Both the position numbers and the translations under genes were made by a program. The notes beneath the pieces were generated by a model. It ran no database searches. It worked only from the letters and a program-made list of their open reading frames with translations, and was not told the origin of the DNA. DNA of 64,000 bases from Klebsormidium nitens (Eukaryota > Plantae > Klebsormidiophyceae): contig DF237012.1 in NCBI GenBank assembly GCA_000708835.1, positions 124,001-188,000 on the forward strand. Reading direction: 5' to 3'. Below are positions 50,111 through 60,570 of this stretch, piece after piece (the first letter of the stretch is position 1; every line of letters begins with the position of its first letter).

Positions 50111-51743
50111 CTGCGTAGGCTGTCTATTTGGTCGAAGGGAGGTCTGGACTCGCATTACCAGGACGATAAGGGCCTTGCTGTACGCACGAAGAGCAGGATC
50201 ACGAACCGCAAAAGAATTGTGTATTTCAGCAGCTGTGGGGAGGGGCAAATACGGCTATCTTTCGGCGTATACCCCCTGTTCTCCCTTGCCCAAACTTCGC
50301 AGGCCAAGATGTCGCCCGACTCGCCCTTCCGGGCGGCATGTCCGGCGCTCTTCTGCGCGCACGAGGTGGCCAATGATTGAGCATCGTTATCGACGTAATT
50401 ATCGACGTCTTAAGACGCGCAAATACGTCATGCTCGAGTCAGTTCGAAGCAGGCTTTGAGAAATGAGCACCTTTTACCAGCCTCACGAGGTGATTCCAGG
50501 CACTCTCAAATTGAACCTACTATAACTGCATATCATTCGCCGTTGAGATTCTGGGATTGTGAATCGCATTGCATCGCAAAGCATATCTCTTCGATTCATC
50601 GTTGTCCGTTTGTTTCCACTCGGTGGATTTGAAAGAATTACGGTCTCCAGCTAATCGAGATAGGAGTAGAGACCTTGCAGCTCTGTATTGTAACGTGGAA
50701 CGTGACGGCGGGGTCACGAGTACCGGTCTACAATTCCGTGAACCAGGTCAACTGGAACAATCGATTCCATCTGCTGGAGTTTCCTGAAAACAATCTTTCC
50801 AGGTGGAGGAGTGTCAGTGCATTCAAGATCGGGCCCGCTCGTCCCTGGTCGGACGGATGAGATCCAAAGTGAAGAGCGCGAAGTCTGTTTTCCGGCCTTG
50901 GAAACGCCGGGCAGCTTTACCCAGCTTCCCAGGAAACCGTCAAGGAGCTTCCAATCGTGACGTCAGCGAACTTTGTGACGAATCGGACCCAGCAGCGGCC
51001 GTCGTCCGTTTGGCATCGCAGTTGTCTTTTGTATCGCTCGTTTCGTGTCAGACTTGATTTTCAGACAATATCGTCAAAATGATGAATTGTGCACTTCAAA
51101 CAGAGTGGATAATACATGCCCTTGATGGTTCGGAAACCATCTGCCAGGGATAAGCGGTCGTTCAGATATGGAGGGTTGTGATAGAAGCTTTGAAAGAAAT
51201 TATTTTACAAAGGTTATATTTCCTGGCCAGTAGATGGAATTTTGTAAGTGCACACTACCAGTGAATGCCGATATAGACGGTGGCTACTGATTGACAGCGT
51301 CATTTGTAAAGCACGTAACTCTGTATGTAAGGAATTCATGTGACGCGAAGCTTCACTTTTGTGTCAGTTGAACAGTTGAAAATTCAGCGAGGCCAATCCC
51401 GTAATCCCGTATCCACCATCAATGGAACAATGGAAGATACATGAACCAATGAAAATGTCGATGGACTGATTGGTTTTGTAGAAGAGGGAAAAGACAAGCA
51501 TCCAAATGGTCCGTCACGTGATTCTGATTTCACAATCAGAATTGTGAGTTCGAATCGCTACATGTCTACTTTCAACTGGTCTGGTCTATTTGAACGGATC
51601 TGAGTTCGCAGTAGCTCGTAGCCGGGCTTCCCCACGCAGCTCCCAGGGGGATCCCTCCGCCACTCTCTATCCGAACGGACTCTCTCAGACAGCCGCGTGG
51701 TCCGGCTCCGCTCCGCAGCCCCCAGAGGGATCCCTCCCGCCAC

Positions 51744-54126
51744 TCAATGGCAAGCGGCCACGTCACCCGGAGCTGCGGGGCACGTCCCGGAGCAGCACAC
51801 CGACTGGGTGCCGGAGCGGTTGAAGCACTGGTGAGGCTTACTAGAGAGGGGGTCGCAGATCCGGGTTGGGTTGAAAATCGGGTTAGGATCGAGGGTGTAG
51901 GTTCCCTTGGGAAGGATGGAGGTTTGCTTGGGAAGGACGACCGGGACGCGAGGGTTAGGGTCAACGCGGAGAGTGCCTTGCGGCACGTTGCCGAAGAGTG
52001 TGCCGCACATGGCCTCCGGACCTGGTGTTGGGCACTGCGGAAAGAAGCAAGAGAACGATCAGACCATGGATGGTTGTGGGCTGATTGAAAAGTGCTTATA
52101 TCCAGACTTGGGCGATAACCAGCCCTGGAAAAAGGTAACAACCCGGTTACTTTTCAAATAACCGACGACTCGAGTCTGGTAATAGGCCCGGTTAGCAGCC
52201 AGGATCCCCCGTGAAGGCGGCGCAGTGACACTTTGTGGTCCAAGATCGCTGGCTTGAGAAGTGGTATAGACCGAGACACTTACCAGATGGTTAGAGAAAT
52301 ATCCTGTTGAAACTAGGCCAATTTTCGTACGACCCTTGTAGAGATCTCCCTCTCAGAAAGCGGAGGCGAAGCAAATCGAGCGTAAACTTCACAGCCGCCC
52401 TCCTTTTGGGGGCTTTGCTGAGCTACAAGGTCTTCCAAACCAGACTCAGCAACGAAGGGGCACTGAGCGAGACTGGGACGTCCGGTTAAAAGCTAGAAAG
52501 TGCACTGAGATTTGAAGAAAAGGGAAACTACGAAGCTTTCAGGTCTCAAGCGTCGAGCAACGAGATTAGTTGTTGAAAGACTTGCACTAATGTTGGCGGA
52601 TCACGCTGAAAGGATTTTCGGGATTGTTATGAGCTCAAGATGCTCACGACAGTGGCCGATCCGCAGCAGACGAACTTGCTCTGGTCGTTATTGAAGCACG
52701 GGGCCGGTTTGGCACTGAGCAGATCGCAGAGGGGACCGCATTCGGCCTCGCCAAAGACGGAAAAGGTGCACTGCGCAGAGTGAGACACGTGTCAGCCCAC
52801 AAGGCCAAGATGATAGGGTATACTTGCGCGCGTGCAGAGGGGACAGCATTCAATCGTCGACTTGCTCCGTGAGTGATACACGTGTCAGCAGATGGGCATG
52901 CGGATCGACGAGGAAGTCGCTGTTCAGCCGCGAAACGAAGCAGGGCAGGATCAAACCTCGTTTAGTTCCTCACATTTTAAGAGCAAACAACGTAATCTTG
53001 GACGTCCCTTGATCTATTTTTCAATTTGCAAAACGCGGAGCCCGCGTAATAATCTGAAGGAGAAGGCTAGATAAGAAAGCTAGGAGCAATTGTGAATTCA
53101 ACTGCAAGATGTTCATGCACGCAAACGGCCTTCATCAGCGCCTGTAACCAGAGTGCTTGATTTCAGTATACCGTCTCGTCCTATCTTCCACCCAACCCGA
53201 CTATGTGGTACCTTTGTTTTCCAGGTTCGAGACGCCGGTAAGTTTCCTCTGAGGCATCAAACTTCCGGCGCCTCCTTTTGAGCGTCTAAGGGATAATATA
53301 TCTCTGCGGATTTGAGGGACTCCCAGATTCGGCCAGGGCGCAAGCGCCAGGTCATGTTGCATAAGGTGACGTCAGCATGCGAAGCGGCATGAGGTCCCGG
53401 GAAAGACTTACGTATGGGCTCCGGCAGCACACGGGGTTCTGGCCCTCGGTGTCGTAGCACGTGTAAGGGTTGTCGGCCAGCTGGCAGAACTCCGTGGAGG
53501 TGCCAGTCTCCTCTGCAATGGTACGCCAAAGTCTGTTTAATGATTGATTAGTTACTTACTACAAAGCTCTTGTCTTTTTTGAAGATAGATTCCTGTAGTG
53601 CTCTCTCATTCGCAAGTTGGCGTTCGCTCGATGCGCCCATCTGGAGTCTACTATTCTGTGAAAAATTCGTGCGATCACGTACAAACGATTAAAGAAACCA
53701 GAAATCCTCGGCCAGAACATCCAGAGAGGCGACACGTTCCAATCCAGCTCATTTGTGCGGGCGTCTGATCTGATCAGCACTCTGACAGCCTCGGCCAGAG
53801 CACAACATTTGCAAAGAAGCTCACACCTCCTAAACCAAAACAAAACCGTTTCCACTGTTGGATCGCACTTCGACGACTTTGGACACAAAAGGGAAGTATA
53901 AAAGAGGATGAACACGCGCGGTCCAGCATATACGAAATCCTCATTTTGCCCAAATGGCGAGTCACCACGTAACATGATTCCCATAGCGTCACAACTTCAG
54001 CTGAATGCGAAGACGTCACGATGACGTGGGAAACTCACGCAAGAGCCGCCTCGCCCCTGAGCTGGTGACGCTCAGCAGCAGCAGGAGGACTGCGGTACGG
54101 ACCGCCATCGAAGCGACGCCCGCCAT
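51744..54126 (-). CDS. Secreted cysteine-rich protein, copy 1: signal peptide, RRLL motif and three C-C-CC-C-C repeats (exons 54126-54039, 53512-53412, 52770-52648, 52034-51744; 200 aa)
   Basis: All introns are GT-AG with matching phases (1,0,0). Protein: MAGVASMAVRTAVLLLLLSVTSSGARRLLQETGTSTEFCQLADNPYTCYDTEGQNPVCCRSPYCTFSVFGEAECGPLCDLLSAKPAPCFNNDQSKFVCCGSATVCPTPGPEAMC...ICDPLSSKPHQCFNRSGTQSVCCSGTCPAAPGDVAACH*. Confidence 0.88.
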
Positions 54127-54579
54127 TGCTGATGTCAGCTGATGTACTTGGGTCGATTGACAGCTTTTGCAGGAGAGTTCGAGCTGTGCCTCTCAAGGGA
54201 CCCGAAAAGTCACCCTTCGTACTGCTTTACTGGATGACCGAAAGCAGGCTGTTTGTCCAGATTCGGAGTGGAGAAAAATTGGAGGGTGGTTGTTTTGGGG
54301 CCTGAAAGGAGCACTGGGGAGCTTCTTCCCGGATTCGCTTGAGGAAATTTGGTCGAGGTGTGTGAATCTGAATGTGACAAAGGGAAGCGTATGGGCCGTC
54401 TTTATGGAACTGTAAAACACAGCATTGCGAGCCCCTCGAGGGTCACTCGAATTGCTGTGAGTCACTCATGTCAGCGAATTCAGTGAGCACCCAGTCAACT
54501 CATCAAGTATTGTTGAAAGTAGGTGCGGTATGCAGTCACAGTCCGACCAGTGCAATAGTACATGAGTGTGCCCCCAGTA

Positions 54580-55050
54580 CTGGTAAACTGCAAGCCGGCC
54601 AGACGTCCACGGTTTCAGTTCGCCAACAGTATGATTGGAACACGTACTCAAGGTGCTCGACCCGTGCTCGACTAGATTCCGGATGGCCCCCGGCCGTCTG
54701 GGATGATTTGCAGCTGTTGATTATGCTTTCTTAGCAGACTTCTGTCTTCCAGAGTAACTTTATTAGCGGCCGTCTCAGGTGGCTATCACTGGCAGCGGCT
54801 GTATCTTTTGAGATACTGAGAGGGAGCGCGCTGCAACTTTCCAGTGGCCCGGTCACTGTCCTGCTAAAAGGAATGGGGCAGTTCCGGGTGCGTTTATGGC
54901 CCGGCAGCCTGCAGGGGGATCATCCTGAGTCACCGGCCCGGGAGTCGGGACCCGGGCGCTTCCCTCAATTGCGACAGGATCGGCTTGGGTTGGGCGACAG
55001 GTTAAAATGGACGGCTGCATTGAAACCGAGCACGCACTGCGCACGGAATG
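54580..55050. promoter_or_regulatory. Conserved non-coding blocks upstream of Cys-rich gene copy 1
   Basis: The blocks GTCCACGGTTTCAGTTCGCCAACAG, TCCGGATGGCCCCCGGCC, GAGGGAGCGCGCTG and ACGGCTGCATT..GAAACCGAGCACGCACTG recur in the same order at ~59970-60570. Confidence 0.6.
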
Positions 55051-57186
55051 GGAAACTTGTTGCAACTGCATTATGGAGGGCCACCCGAGTACACAGTAAT
55101 TTCTGGTTACTACAGCTTCTACCTAGTAGTACCGAGCAACCTGCCAGTTTTCGTGTCGACTAAATTAGACTAATTGCAGTCAGCAGCAGACTGACTAACT
55201 TGCACTAATACTCCCACTAAAACTGGCAGGATGGTCGGAAGAAGCTGTAGTTAGCAGCTAGGTTGATGACCATCCCACCAGGCCTAATCAGTCTTAGGTA
55301 TTTATTGGACAACATCATACCGGGCTTCAACCTTGTTTCACCGCTAGACATCGCCCAAGTTTGGTTCTTGCAGGCCAGACATACTGTAACCTGTTCAAAC
55401 ATCCCGAAATAACCTCACATTGACATCGATCTTTTAGGGGCCATAAACTATTGTGGGTCATTCTCCATTATGAAGCTCTTTCTTACCACACTCGGCCCCT
55501 TGCGCGTAAGCACGTCTGTGCCAAAAGATCAGCGCCTCGATTTCTGCAAGCCAACCTGCATATGCTTGTGAATGCAGTGCTGGTTCTGAAGCAAGAAATG
55601 TAATCATGAATCATGTTAGAGATATGCCAGCACATCGGTCCTCTGAGCGGCGGAAGGTTCCAAAGCTAGGCTGCTCGTATCGGAAACATCGGAGATGGAA
55701 AGCCCAAAAGTTTGACAGCTTTCCGGCGCTTGGACGTACACGCTGGGTCCTGAGGTTTCATTTGACCTATAATTTAGGCGCGGTCGACGAGCTTTGAACT
55801 GCACGAGAGTTCTCTAAATCATCCAAAGCCACTACTGGCCCCTTTCCATTGACATTTCATCCTGTTCCTTCTCTCGCTCGTTTGGATAGGGCTCTTCATG
55901 AAGATCAGGCTTCAAGCTTATTGACTTGCAGAGCAACTTAGAGCGAGCTACTTCGCCTTGAATCGAAGGTTGATTGACATACAACAATTTGGGAGGGATT
56001 GCCGAGGTGAATTGCCGAAGGCATCCGATCAAAGCGTCCGAGCAGGAAAACCAGCAGTAGTCGGAAGGCGCATTTTTACTCAAAACGCCGTTAGTCCGTC
56101 TGAAATGTGGTTTCATCTGGCCACGAGGTGTCAAGTGAGCACAGCGTAACCGGCGGCCATTCTCGTTGATCCAAGGGTTAGGGCAGCATCATCCAGCATT
56201 GCTAAAGAGCACACTGTGGCTGCATGTGAAGGTGAATGTTAAAAGACCATCAAGCCGTGTTTCTCATGAATGAAGAAAAGTTCCTAATCTAGGAGCCCCT
56301 GGAATGCGCCGATGAATTGATTTCCAATTGATATGTCCATAGAATTGTGATATGTACTGCCTTGCTCTAAGCTTTAAGAAATACTCGGAGACTCGTCGTC
56401 TAGAACTAACACGTATCTTTTTATGGAGTCCTTTTTGCCTATTTGTACGCTTTTTGACTAGCCAGACATTCCTAATCTGTGAGAAGCGCGCGGACATTTA
56501 TATTATTGTCATCATAGGGACGCAGCAAAGGTTCGCAAAGCCGGCCACATTCGTACATCATCATATCCAGAGCTCATACAAGATTGACGGACGCACGCGG
56601 CGCACACAATGCGTCGTGGTAAGGAGAAGCTTCTGGCGGTTTGTAGAATGAGACAAGCATCAATTCATCCAGTATGATTCACGAGGGGGTGCATCTGAGT
56701 TGCCACTTCCCCTCTCGCTGGTCGCTACTGAAGCAACTATGTAGACCCAAGCGGAAAATAAATACTCTCAAATCTGTCCAGCTCGATCATGAACTAGATT
56801 CTGCGAAGCTATGCCGCTATAGAAATAGCATCATATAGGCAAACTCTACGTATGGATGTGATTTCGACCAATACTTCTGCACAAAGGAAGTTCTTTTGAC
56901 ATTTCCCCTTCTGACATTTCGGAGGGAGATGTCTAACGAAAATCTGACGCTTCTAGGGTTTCGTTACGTGGCAGAAGTGTATCTTTTGGCAGGAACGGCA
57001 CACCTCCCGGCACAGTCTACCGGCCACTCTCGAAGACGGTCCTCAAGTGCCACGCCACGGCTCTCGCGCCTTCGGGGCATCTTACCGACCGCTTACATGC
57101 CCTGGATGGCCGCGCCGGCCGATTCCGCTACGGGGGGATCCCTCCGGCCACTGCCCCGCGCAAACGCGGCCACGTCACCCGCAGTC

Positions 57187-59406
57187 TCACGCGCAGGCGG
57201 GCAGGTCACCCGGGTCCGCGGCGCAGGCCTCGGGGCAACACTTCGATGCGTCAAGGTTGCGGTTAAAGCACTGGTTAGGCTGACCCGAGCTGGGGTCGCA
57301 GGCCGGGGTTGGGTTAGGTTCGAGGAGTTGGGTGTGCAATGGAGCGAGGGTCATAGTATGGGTGTGTACTGGAGCAAGGGTTTGGGTATGGAGTGTCTTT
57401 ACTGGGATACTAAAGCACGTGGGCTCTGGACCGGGGTTCGCTGGGCACTGCGGAGAATACAAGATGGTTTGACGGGTTAAGCATAGTTGGTTACGCGCTC
57501 GTTAGCAGCTGGTTCTACGTCCAAATGACCAAAGTCGAGCAGGAACCAGACAAAAGTCTGGTTACCGAGCCTGATTAGCATTCGAACCTTTCTGAGAAAG
57601 TAACAGGCGCCAACGCAATTCTTCGGACCAGCAAGACAAGGAGACCCGCTTGCGCGCAAAGACATCAGGAAGACAACGTCAATCTCAGGCGATGACGCAT
57701 GGAGATTGAGTGAACATTTATTCATTGAACCTGCTGTTCGCTTTGCGACACCCAAAGAAAACTACTTTCGATTGAGCACGGCCTTTTGGAAAGTACGGGA
57801 GCTGCTCTTGGGTAAGAACTTAAGAGGGGCAGAGGTTAAGAGCTTTCAGATCAGTCCCGGCGCGACTCAAACCCTGTGAACTCTTATTGGCGATCTCCCT
57901 CTCAAAACGAAAACGAAGCAGACTTCATGGATCTCACAGCCGCCATTTCCTTTGGGAGCTTTACAAACAAAAAAAGGGTCACAGTCAAACTCGGCCACAA
58001 ACGGAGACTAAGCGAGGCCGGGCCGAAAGAAAGAAAGGCGAGCGAAAGGACGCTGGATCCAAAACTTAAAATGCTCACGGGATGAGCGAACGAGCAGCAG
58101 ACAAACTTCGTTTTGTCATTATTGAAGCACGCTCCGGGTGCCCTACTGAGCGGATCGCAGAGGGGACCGCATTCGGCCCTGCCGTCGGGCGCCAATTGGC
58201 ACTGCGCAGAGGGAGACACGTGTCAGCATGTGGCCATGCATGGAAGAGGAAGCTGCTGTCGAGGCGAGAGAATAGGCTCGGACCTAGTACATCCCTTCCT
58301 CTCCAAATGCGTTCATTCTTGTGGAGGCAACTGAGGGTGGTCTTTTGCAATAATTCTCTGCTTCGTGTTGTTGGGAATCTCCACTCATACAATGGACGCG
58401 GCTAAAAGGATGTGGCTAGATGAAAAAGGCCGACAAGCAGAACGGTCCGCGACAAAAAGTACAACGCAAGCAGAGAACCTTCATCTAGCCTGTACACAGA
58501 GTTTTGGGATTCAACCTCTAATCCGGCTCTAGCTTACACCCATAACTGTTTTCGGAAACTTTGGACTTTCCTTCGAACCTGGAGAATCGTCCACTTTCTT
58601 CAGCAATCGAAACTTTTGCAGTAGCTTCTGAGCGTCTGAAACATAACAACGTCTTACAGTCCGACAACTCGGAGATCCCGTGCTGCTGAATAAGCACCAG
58701 AGCAGGTTGCATAAGGTGATGTCAGCATGTAAAGGACTCATGACGTCGCATGACGGACTTACAAAGCGACTCTTGCAGCACACGGGGTTCCTGCCGTTTG
58801 CTTCGTAGCACGAGTACGGAGCCCCATACAGATCGCAAGGCTCCGCGTAGCTTCCAATATCTTCTGCAAAGGATACACGCCACGTTTTGGTCTACGTTTC
58901 TTCTCTGAATGACCCGGACTTTTGGTCTTTCATATTTGCTTTTCTGCATCCAATGCTTCCTCAATTGCTTGTCAGCCTTTTTCGCTCGGGCGCTCAGCCA
59001 GCATCGATCTACAAGGTGACTATGCGACTAGGCAAAACTGTCCGAAGTGTGAGGACATGCTAGTTCCGCATGTGGATGAGCTGATCTGAGAAACGAAAGT
59101 ACTCTCTGCTGGCAATCTCACCCTTCTGAATCGAAAACTTCGTTTTCGGGGACAATCAAGTCATCCGGACTTTGATTGATCTCAAAGGGTGTTCTTAGTA
59201 TCCAGTCTAGTTTCCCATTTGGTAATAATGACAAAGCAAGCTTCCTCCTCCGGAATCGCATTCCAGTGATGCATACCCTCACAGGCAAAGAGTCTCCAGG
59301 CGCAAGAACGTCATCATGACGTAGCAGACAGCTCACCTATGGGCCTCCTCGCCTCTGAGCAAGCCACGCCAAGCACCAGCAGGAGGACTGCGGTTCGGAC
59401 CGCCAT
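57187..59406 (-). CDS. Secreted cysteine-rich protein, copy 2 (exons 59406-59337, 58863-58763, 58201-58079, 57447-57187; 184 aa)
   Basis: Internal exon lengths (101 and 123 nt) and phases are identical to copy 1. Protein: MAVRTAVLLLVLGVACSEARRPIEDIGSYAEPCDLYGAPYSCYEANGRNPVCCKSRFCQLAPDGRAECGPLCDPLSRAPGACFNNDKTKFVCCSFAHPCPANPGPEPTC...ACDPSSGQPNQCFNRNLDASKCCPEACAADPGDLPACA*. Confidence 0.88.
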
Positions 59407-59959
59407 TGCTGACGTCAGCGGTACGTAGTAGGTCAAAGTGCAGGTCCTCTGTAGGAATTTCTAATTACGACAGCTCTTCTCACGTTGTTAAGGGCTGTTT
59501 CTTAGGACCGACCAGAAAGTGGCCCGTCAATCTGCTTCAAGATTTTATGGCCACCAAAGGGCAGGCTCTTTATGAAGAATGGGAGTAATGTAGTAATATA
59601 CACTTGTCTTTCGAGGGTGTTGATTTAGGGGGCAACAACTTGAAGACTCTTTCTTTGGATGCGCTTGCTAATCTGTTGGTGGGGGGCATTTGGATCTTCA
59701 AGGAAAGCTTCAGCAGGTCTTTCAAAGTACTGTTGTTATGATGCGCGTTGCTTGACCTCAAGAGCGCTCAAAGTAACGGCGGATCAAACACCCAACCTGC
59801 GCACTGCCAGTCAGCTCCGAGTTGTCAATTCATGGTCAAGCCAAGTTCTCGCGCTCGATCGAGAGTTTTTAAGCTTATATAGCTACAAATTAGTGGTGCA
59901 TGCAAGATGCTGTTAGGGTCCGCCCGCAGCTGTGTGCAGTGTGCCCCAAAACTACTGAC

Positions 59960-60570
59960 CTAAGATGGTCCACAAGTCCACGCTTTCACTTCGCCAACAG
60001 ATTGAGAACAGCAAATAATCAACGCGCTTTCAAAATGATCAGGCTCCGGATGGCCCCCGGCCTTCTGAGCTGAATTGTGGCAGCTTTTGACTGAAGCAAG
60101 TATTGCGAAGTTTGACTCTCGACTGTCCCAGGTGAGTCGGCGACTGAGGCGTTACAAGTTGCGTAGAGGGAGTGCGCTGACGTGAGTTCCAGTCCCCGGC
60201 CGGGCCTGCTAAGCGCGCGGGTGCGTCCGTTTGAGTGATATGCGACAAGTTCCCGGGGCGCACCGCCACTGAATTCAACAAACATCATAATAAGCCGAGA
60301 TAATAAGAAGGTAACCGCACTGGGACGGTAGGGTTAGTTTGATAGTTAGGGTGGGTACGGGTGCGGAGCATCTGGGTTAGGGCTTAATCTGAGTATTAGT
60401 CGAAGCTTGCTATCGTCTTTCTTGAGATTTATCGCGCCGCACGATAAATAACAGTACGAGTTGAAACCGAGCGGAGCCGGGCCGGCGTCTAGTGGACTCT
60501 GCTGATCAGTCACGACCGTGGAAGTTGAAGATGTGGACACGGCTGCATTATTGGAACTGAGCACGCACTG
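59960..60570. promoter_or_regulatory. Conserved non-coding blocks upstream of Cys-rich gene copy 2
   Basis: The blocks GTCCACGCTTTCACTTCGCCAACAG, TCCGGATGGCCCCCGGCC, GAGGGAGTGCGCTG and ACGGCTGCATTATTGGAACTGAGCACGCACTG match those at 54580-55050. Confidence 0.6.

Follow-up and report, generated by a model that had tools for sequence, protein, structure and literature searches.

The question raised by this locus is what two tandem genes of the alga Klebsormidium nitens, each of which appears to encode a small cysteine-rich protein of the secreted type, are likely to do. The stretch studied comprises 64,000 nucleotides (nt) of contig DF237012.1 (positions 124,001 to 188,000), referred to as the window, and the analysis presented here is a reading of the minus strand of its positions 51000-60000. 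In a preliminary description of the locus, the two genes had been taken for knottin-like peptides or peptide precursors with a possible role in defence. We arrive at a different reading. The module from which both proteins are built resembles a tag for extracellular binding or anchoring more than a toxin-like knottin, and by analogy it seems quite possible, if short of probable, that the products of genes 1 and 2 are secreted and bind the wall or matrix in a multivalent manner. We favour this reading because the same module is found as a terminal tag behind Pro/Ser/Thr-rich linkers on unrelated proteins, and also in multi-copy proteins that consist of modules only.

Two tandem genes with three six-cysteine repeats each

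Gene 1 (KFL_000630260, protein P0012) occupies positions 51744..54126 and encodes 200 amino acids from ATG to stop, and gene 2 (KFL_000630265, protein P0003) occupies 57187..59406 and encodes 184. Both lie in the same orientation on the minus strand and have four exons each, located at 54126-54039, 53512-53412, 52770-52648 and 52034-51744 in gene 1 and at 59406-59337, 58863-58763, 58201-58079 and 57447-57187 in gene 2. All six introns have GT..AG ends; in both genes exon 1 ends in phase 1, the remaining junctions are in phase 0 immediately 5' of a cysteine (Cys) codon, and the internal exons measure 101 and 123 nt. The products of our splice models are identical to the GenBank entries P0012 and P0003, and the genes are already held there, with identical models, as hypothetical proteins of K. 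nitens; the window itself agrees with contig DF237012.1 over 16.8 kb without a single mismatch. They had previously been called unrecognised, which stands in so far as no named family was found in Pfam or among PDB sequences (E≤10), but not as regards the models themselves.

The preliminary description suggested that the splice models be checked against RNA-seq data. Transcript contigs from four runs of four studies were aligned to 53411-59410, a segment that covers gene 2 and the first two exons of gene 1. The gene 2 junctions 57447|58079, 58201|58763 and 58863|59337, which read CT..AC on the plus strand, are each joined in contigs of three runs from three studies. All three introns of gene 2 are confirmed as modelled, and gene 2 is expressed and spliced. 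Of the words sampled from the stretch, approximately 5-22% are present in 17 runs labelled Klebsormidium nitens, roughly the share expected from exons and untranslated regions (UTRs).

The first exon of each gene encodes a putative signal peptide. In gene 1 (54039..54126, minus strand) the hydrophobic core reads AVLLLLLSVT, with a maximal 10-residue Kyte-Doolittle mean of 2.8, and in gene 2 (59337..59406, minus strand) it reads VLLLVLGVAC, with a mean of 3.2; judged by this hydrophobicity, both N-termini are signal-peptide-like. The mature part of each protein contains 18 Cys residues, and gene 2 has a nineteenth within the signal peptide. The number of residues between successive Cys in gene 1 (gene 2 in brackets where different) is 8,9,0,4,9 / 3 / 9,9,0,5,8(9) / 49(38) / 9,9,0,3,9. 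Each protein therefore has three C-x8/9-C-x9-CC-x3-5-C-x8/9-C repeats, of which repeats 1 and 2 are separated by three residues and repeat 3 follows a Pro-containing linker. When the 64-kb window is translated in all six frames, the half-pattern C-x8/9-C-x9-CC is found six times, always inside genes 1 and 2; as 20 shuffles of the window gave a single occurrence in total, the triple-repeat Cys pattern is far beyond chance. Gene models, spacing and shuffles thus agree with the earlier account of two four-exon tandem paralogs with three six-Cys repeats each, and the 18 Cys, the conserved scaffold and the matching internal exon sizes were all found as described. The proposal that these are secreted-type, disulfide-rich paralogs also fits their signal-like N-termini and fixed Cys scaffold.

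Repeat 1 of gene 1 (residues 39-74; 52738..53486, minus strand) has Cys1-4 in exon 2 (53486-53412) and Cys5-6 in exon 3 (52770-52738), and is interrupted by intron 2 just 5' of Cys5. Repeat 2 (residues 78-114; 52005..52728, minus strand) is interrupted at the same place by intron 3, with Cys1-4 in exon 3 (52728-52648) and Cys5-6 in exon 4 (52034-52005). A Pro-rich, basic linker with a repeated T-L-x-x-D-P-N-P motif (residues 115-163; 51858..52004, minus strand) leads to repeat 3 (residues 164-199; 51750..51857, minus strand), which is an uninterrupted canonical module. Gene 2, on the same strand, is arranged likewise: repeat 1 (residues 33-68; 58169..58837) is encoded by 58837-58763 in exon 2 and 58201-58169 in exon 3, repeat 2 (residues 72-109; 57415..58159) by 58159-58079 in exon 3 and 57447-57415 in exon 4, and a linker with a repeated T-L-A-P-x-H-T motif (residues 110-147; 57301..57414) precedes the uninterrupted canonical repeat 3 (residues 148-183; 57193..57300). 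The net charge of the modules lies between -5 and +1 and the pI of the mature protein is about 5.6.

The two proteins are 48-51% identical and all module Cys are kept. In the pairwise comparison, dN (nonsynonymous divergence) is about 0.41 and dS (synonymous divergence) about 0.65-0.80; dN/dS is 0.54 in the modules, 0.65 when the Cys codons are left out and 0.80 in the linker, which shows that the modules are under moderate constraint and that the linker is drifting near neutrality. There is no pairwise signal of diversifying selection between the two genes. Their introns do not align beyond short blocks beside the exons.

A module shared with unrelated secreted-type proteins

The canonical module is 36 residues long, with the consensus C-D-P-x-S-x-x-P-N-Q-C-F-N-A-x-G-x4-C-C-x3-C-P-x-N-P-G-x-x-P-x-C and a Cys spacing of 9-9-0-3-9. 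A phmmer search with gene 1 exon 4 against 1.84 billion representative proteins gave ten matches, of which eight are true matches to repeat 3, all from K. nitens or from metagenomes of the Joint Genome Institute (JGI); the E-values of the family members range from 3.6e-32 to 2.4e-4. Matches P0007 and P0010 were rejected as spurious, as only the linker aligned; these are repetitive or immunoglobulin-repeat-type sequences, probably from animals. Gene 1, one protein of the NAGPA family and two further proteins from metagenomes were recovered in homologue searches with P0003 and P0001.

The proteins that carry the module have little else in common. P0013 combines a NAGPA-type glycosidase domain (PF09992) with two modules, and P0008 has a Dirigent domain (PF03018) and a single module at its C terminus. 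In P0005 (1501 amino acids) three modules accompany an N-terminal part of 1,100 residues that resembles right-handed beta-helix/PMP-repeat proteins according to a language-model lead (score 0.95). P0002 and its metagenome orthologue P0011 have an unassigned 290-residue domain and two modules, and an ESM Atlas look-up of the N-terminal domain of P0002 gave nothing useful. P0009 has a Cys-containing N-terminal part, a Thr/Pro-rich linker and three modules. Finally, P0001 (KFL_001660180), whose gene adjoins the NAGPA gene of P0013, contains no partner domain; its four complete modules and one N-terminally truncated module are joined by Ser/Pro/Thr linkers. The full-length K. nitens proteins P0002, P0005, P0008 and P0013 have N-termini that read as signal-like. 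On this evidence the module is a mobile terminal appendage, attached to unrelated secreted-type proteins by Pro/Ser/Thr-rich linkers that are probably flexible and glycosylated, and genes 1 and 2 are the module-only version of it, without partner domain. The previous notion of a free-standing peptide family is not supported by this finding; an appendage at the ends of unrelated proteins suggests that the module serves in binding or anchoring.

In an alignment of 30 modules (A1) the six Cys are invariant, and consequently there is no pattern of pairwise Cys loss from which bonds could be deduced. The Gly in the turn between Cys2 and Cys3 is nearly invariant, with Leu in its place in repeat 3 of gene 2, and the D-P-x-S-x-x-P-N-Q-C-F-N motif from Cys1 to Cys2 is conserved throughout the family. 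An F/Y directly after Cys2 is invariant and a second F/Y is frequent two residues ahead of Cys3, on the opposite strand; the conserved non-Cys motif including these two aromatic positions would fit a conserved binding surface. The loop between Cys5 and Cys6 is Pro/Gly-rich in most members. All three repeats of both genes are in register in A1 and are 30-57% identical to gene 1 repeat 3. In both genes, repeat 3 fits the canonical spacing exactly and has the motif (with H for N in gene 1); repeat 2 is intermediate, with a partial motif, and repeat 1 is the most diverged, with most of the motif lost, and both of these repeats show length changes of one or two residues.

The genes of the family differ in their exon structure. 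In P0001 and P0013 an intron in phase 0 separates Q from Cys2. This intron is missing from genes 1 and 2; these instead have phase-0 introns just 5' of Cys5 in repeats 1 and 2 and none in repeat 3, and because of this different placement they form a separate sub-lineage by gene structure. The intron before Cys2 is not universal in the family, since P0006, encoded at L002:6001-6609 on a eukaryote-like 147-kb contig of JGI metagenome 3300060285, has two uninterrupted modules in one open reading frame (ORF). The P0001 gene (L001:10001-14214, DF237115.1) contains three phase-0 exons of an identical length of 192 nt, each of which extends from Cys2 to just before the next Cys2, a pattern consistent with tandem exon duplication. 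As annotated, P0001 has no signal peptide and begins in mid-module, and for these reasons its 5' end is probably mis-annotated.

The module family appears to be new, in that we found no Pfam entry, solved relative or paper for it, while the two genes themselves were known as hypothetical proteins; judged by the searches so far, this unnamed family has been seen only in K. nitens and a few metagenome proteins. None of the six exon translations of genes 1 and 2 matched Pfam at E≤10, and the 30 single modules gave only noise, including a match to Antifungal_pept (PF11410) in one of the 30 (E 0.43). Comparison of eight family proteins with Pfam also brought up no match for the module. The Pfam rows for TTc_toxin_rep on P0001 (18 bits, cutoff 29) and for Keratin_B2_2 were likewise set aside as noise. 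A PDB sequence-profile search gave nothing for the module at E≤10, and an ESM Atlas feature search with exon 4 gave no usable match. No confirmed relative was detected when alignment A2 and P0003 were compared with metagenome contigs and with bacterial and archaeal genomes, which does not show absence, since JGI metagenome proteins carry the module. In the literature searched, neither gene is mentioned by name, the motif does not appear, and we found no account of a module of this kind from Klebsormidium.

Predicted fold and possible functions

AlphaFold2 models were obtained for repeat 3 of gene 1, using the 30-module alignment, and for the repeat 1-2 tandem, using 12 two-module rows, and were read as secondary structure and predicted local distance difference test (pLDDT) values. 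In the repeat 3 model (mean pLDDT 92.4) there is a single beta-hairpin, whose first strand (residues 12-15) lies around Cys2 and whose second (residues 22-25) ends in Cys3-Cys4, and the Pro-rich segment from Cys5 to Cys6 is coil. The tandem model (pLDDT 82.4) has the Cys2/Cys3-4 hairpin in both repeats, and a second hairpin at Cys5/Cys6 is seen in repeat 1 and is absent from the models of repeats 2 and 3. The module as predicted is a small beta-hairpin that three disulfides would hold in place. No significant match was found for either model with Foldseek against the PDB, by exhaustive VIA alignment to 48,161 PDB representatives, in a second look at the Foldseek candidates, or in an ESM Atlas shape search. 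The sole row with Z≥2 among the 48,161 chains is zebrafish granulin AaE (6cku), aligned with the tandem model (Z 2.1, root-mean-square deviation 2.6 Å, 48 residues). As very small models score poorly, these blanks would count as a weak negative and not as proof of a new fold.

Among small disulfide-rich domains, the closest parallel in architecture is carbohydrate-binding module family 1 (CBM1). In fungi CBM1 is a disulfide-stabilised small beta structure of about 36 residues with four Cys and a flat face of three aromatic residues, which sits at the ends of unrelated enzymes behind Pro/Ser/Thr linkers. The Klebsormidium module resembles it in size, in its small beta structure and in its terminal position behind such linkers; however, it has six Cys rather than four, lacks the three-aromatic flat face and has no Pfam CBM_1 match at E≤10. 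Hevein (CBM18) is likewise a small domain with a CC pair that occurs both as an enzyme appendage, for example on chitinases, and in tandem-only proteins, wheat germ agglutinin and Urtica agglutinin being hevein-only lectins. By analogy, the relation of genes 1 and 2 to the Klebsormidium module may be that of these lectins to hevein. The module differs from hevein in having six Cys instead of eight, in their spacing and in the lack of the S-x-aromatic-G-aromatic-C-G motif. Hevein had been named previously as an alternative fold, but none of the exons and none of the 30 modules matched Pfam Chitin_bind_1 at E≤10, and we found no structural match to hevein.

The C-C-CC-C-C order and the similar length are shared with inhibitor cystine knot peptides, and plant knottin-type peptides (PAFP-S/Mj-AMP) also have the Cys3Cys4-x3-Cys5 spacing. 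In contrast to knottins, loops 1 and 2 of the module are longer (8-9 residues), its hairpin is predicted between Cys2 and Cys3-4, the segment from Cys5 to Cys6 is a Pro-rich coil, and the modules are not cationic, serve as an enzyme tag and show no sequence or fold match to knottins. The hairpin position and the Pro-rich Cys5-Cys6 loop of the canonical model in particular argue against a classical knottin. The repeat 1-2 tandem, with 12 Cys in 76 residues and a predicted series of short hairpins, resembles granulin, a 12-Cys module of stacked beta-hairpins; however, the tandem has two CC pairs where granulin has four in another spacing, there is no sequence similarity, and the structural match is at noise level.

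A small disulfide-rich module placed terminally behind linkers, and found also by itself in multi-copy proteins, is a pattern known from carbohydrate-binding and wall-anchoring modules, and the wall enzymes of fungi and plants bear small carbohydrate-binding modules attached in this way. Each of the two proteins would consist of a signal peptide and two diverged modules fused head to tail, which a Pro-rich linker joins to a single canonical module; neither contains an enzyme. We envisage that they are exported and folded oxidatively, and that they could attach through several modules at once to a cell-wall or matrix polymer, such that the proteins might act as lectin-like cross-linkers, as coat proteins, or as competitors for the sites of the tagged enzymes. 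A more specific version, in which the module is a new wall-polymer (carbohydrate) binding family of the Klebsormidium lineage, a counterpart of CBM1 with an unmatched fold, and genes 1 and 2 encode lectin-like proteins that coat the wall or cross-link it in a multivalent fashion, is possible but doubtful. Of the functions listed in the preliminary description, 'surface-coating protein' comes closest to the reading we favour, and defence is not favoured. Several points weigh against the binding reading. The functional assignment is an analogy between architectures, and secretion, disulfide bonding, any binding and its ligand are inferred. The module has one or two conserved aromatic positions, fewer than make up the aromatic platforms of CBM1 or hevein. 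In repeats 1 and 2 so much of the motif is lost that they may differ from the canonical module in ligand. The family range and the list of partners come from one single-sequence search and are hence incomplete. In addition, no contig was found for exons 1-2 of gene 1 in the four runs examined, a gap that in itself proves nothing.

Other functions were weighed against this. It is unlikely, in our estimation, that the module mediates protein-protein contacts or self-assembly in the matrix, oligomerizing or cross-linking wall glycoproteins without binding any polysaccharide, with genes 1 and 2 as small cross-linkers. In volvocine hydroxyproline-rich glycoproteins, globular Cys-rich heads mediate oligomerization and cross-linking of this kind, and P0001, in which modules are strung like beads between Ser/Pro/Thr-rich, glycoprotein-like linkers, would fit such a role, as would the two to five copies of the module per protein and, very weakly, the match of the tandem to the stacked hairpins of granulin. 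However, the tagging of a dirigent protein with a single copy fits targeting to a substrate or to the wall at least as well. Less likely again are defence effectors, i.e. inhibitor-cystine-knot repeats with antimicrobial, anti-grazer or toxin-like activity, possibly released from a precursor. The C-C-CC-C-C framework occurs three times per protein, the tandem paralogs keep every Cys at about 50% identity, repeat 1 is modelled with knottin-like strands at Cys5 and Cys6, and the noise-level Antifungal_pept match points in the same direction. On the other hand, the canonical module is modelled without a Cys5-Cys6 hairpin, having a Pro/Gly-rich coil there, no knottin is found among the Foldseek or VIA matches, and the same module tags enzymes. 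We do not regard the proteins as cationic antimicrobial or released toxin-like peptides because the charge of the modules is neutral to acidic, no dibasic or other processing sites are present between the repeats of either protein, and dN/dS is below 1. The earlier proposals fare accordingly: the knottin fold, while still conceivable, is not supported, given the predicted hairpin between Cys2 and Cys3-4 of the canonical repeat and the lack of a Foldseek or other structural knottin match; a set of variable-loop defence peptides is at odds with loops 1-2 that are conserved across the family and carry its motif rather than being hypervariable, with the charge of the modules and with a dN/dS of 0.5-0.65; and a precursor is not suggested by repeats 1 and 2 that lie only three residues apart with no dibasic site between repeats.

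It has also to be considered whether the proteins are inhibitors of proteases or other enzymes, built from tandem disulfide-rich domains as in the potato type II and Kazal-type families. This is very unlikely. The multi-domain, secreted-type, Cys-rich architecture would be suitable, and tomato inhibitor II, a Nicotiana chymotrypsin inhibitor and follistatin-type domains appear among the non-significant Foldseek rows (E 2-10), but all of these are at noise level and no inhibitor family in Pfam or among PDB sequences matches in sequence. Moreover, the conserved motif lies in the hairpin region and not in an exposed, variable reactive-site loop, and an inhibitor domain would be hard to rationalize on glycosidase-like and dirigent proteins. 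A role as precursors of secreted signalling peptides, comparable to the cysteine-rich ligands of land plants, strikes us as still more remote: such a role would suit small, secreted-type, Cys-rich products of a streptophyte alga, and expression was seen for gene 2, but the modules are not separated by cleavage motifs, large enzymes carry the same module as a tag, and no named family such as EPF, RALF or LURE came up as similar in Pfam.

The reading of genes 1 and 2 as wall- or matrix-binding proteins is of wider interest since Klebsormidium is an early-branching, land-living streptophyte, whose wall and matrix proteins bear on how the ancestors of plants coped with drying and with life on surfaces. 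A lineage-specific module, reused on glycosidase-like, dirigent, beta-helix and module-only proteins, would provide a handle for finding the extracellular proteome of this alga and for studying how enzymes are targeted to its wall. Should the module bind a defined polymer, it would define a new family of the CBM type and offer a compact binding scaffold stabilised by disulfides; should it bind none, the two genes would be ordinary lineage-specific secreted cysteine-rich proteins.

Transcribed flanks and candidate regulatory elements

Gene 2 has a 3' UTR of about 470 nt (56715..57186, minus strand), covered by contigs X1-1 and X2-6, which run from 56715/56721 to exon 4. Contigs X1-3 and X2-6 extend 593-596 nt past 59410 and define a probable 5' UTR of about 600 nt, if colinear (59407..60006, minus strand). 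On the same proviso this region contains three upstream ATGs, with ORFs of 3, 2 and 39 codons, and the matching region of gene 1 contains four; translational control by the upstream ATGs of gene 2 is possible. Comparison of the upstream regions by blastn and MAFFT revealed two blocks common to both paralogs, at 59970-60075 in gene 2 and at approximately 54599-54700 in gene 1 (minus strand). They lie about 500-660 nt 5' of each ATG and consist of G-G-C-C-G-G-G-G-G-C-C-A-T-C-C-G-G-A and a segment of about 30 nt starting with C-T-G-T-T-G-G-C-G-A-A. The gene 2 contigs stop at about 60003-60006, at the second of these blocks. The conservation of the blocks between the paralogs, together with the end of the contigs at the second block, suggests a candidate common promoter or transcription start site and unusually long 5' UTRs of about 500-600 nt.

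A number of elements with an ACGT core were noticed in both genes. T-G-A-C-G-T-C-A is present just 5' of the gene 2 ATG (59410), and paired A-C-G-T-C-A/T-G-A-C-G-T half-sites are found at the start of intron 1 in both genes (54013-54024 and 59308-59319). Intron 2 contains in both (53342-53411 and 58692-58762) a conserved block of about 24 nt with T-G-A-C-G-T-C-A, and C-A-C-G-T-G lies just 5' of exon 3 (52771-52796 and 58202-58227). These elements are kept at matching places, while the rest of the introns is unalignable, and the density of TGACGT half-sites in the two loci is about twice that of the window overall. The conserved sites are candidates for bZIP-type intronic or promoter elements.

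In three runs, intron 3 of gene 2 is covered at 57312-58108 by contigs of low depth (1-5, where the spliced form reaches 19-28), which could reflect unspliced pre-mRNA, intron retention or genomic DNA carry-over. The neighbouring genes, which encode a kinase/RING protein, a 243-residue protein without Pfam match and a TPM phosphatase, offer no functional context. In the 3-kb spacer between genes 1 and 2, the segment 56240-56477 is matched by contigs from two studies with four differences, a 3-nt insertion and unrelated flanks, and is probably a dispersed repeat that is transcribed from another copy.

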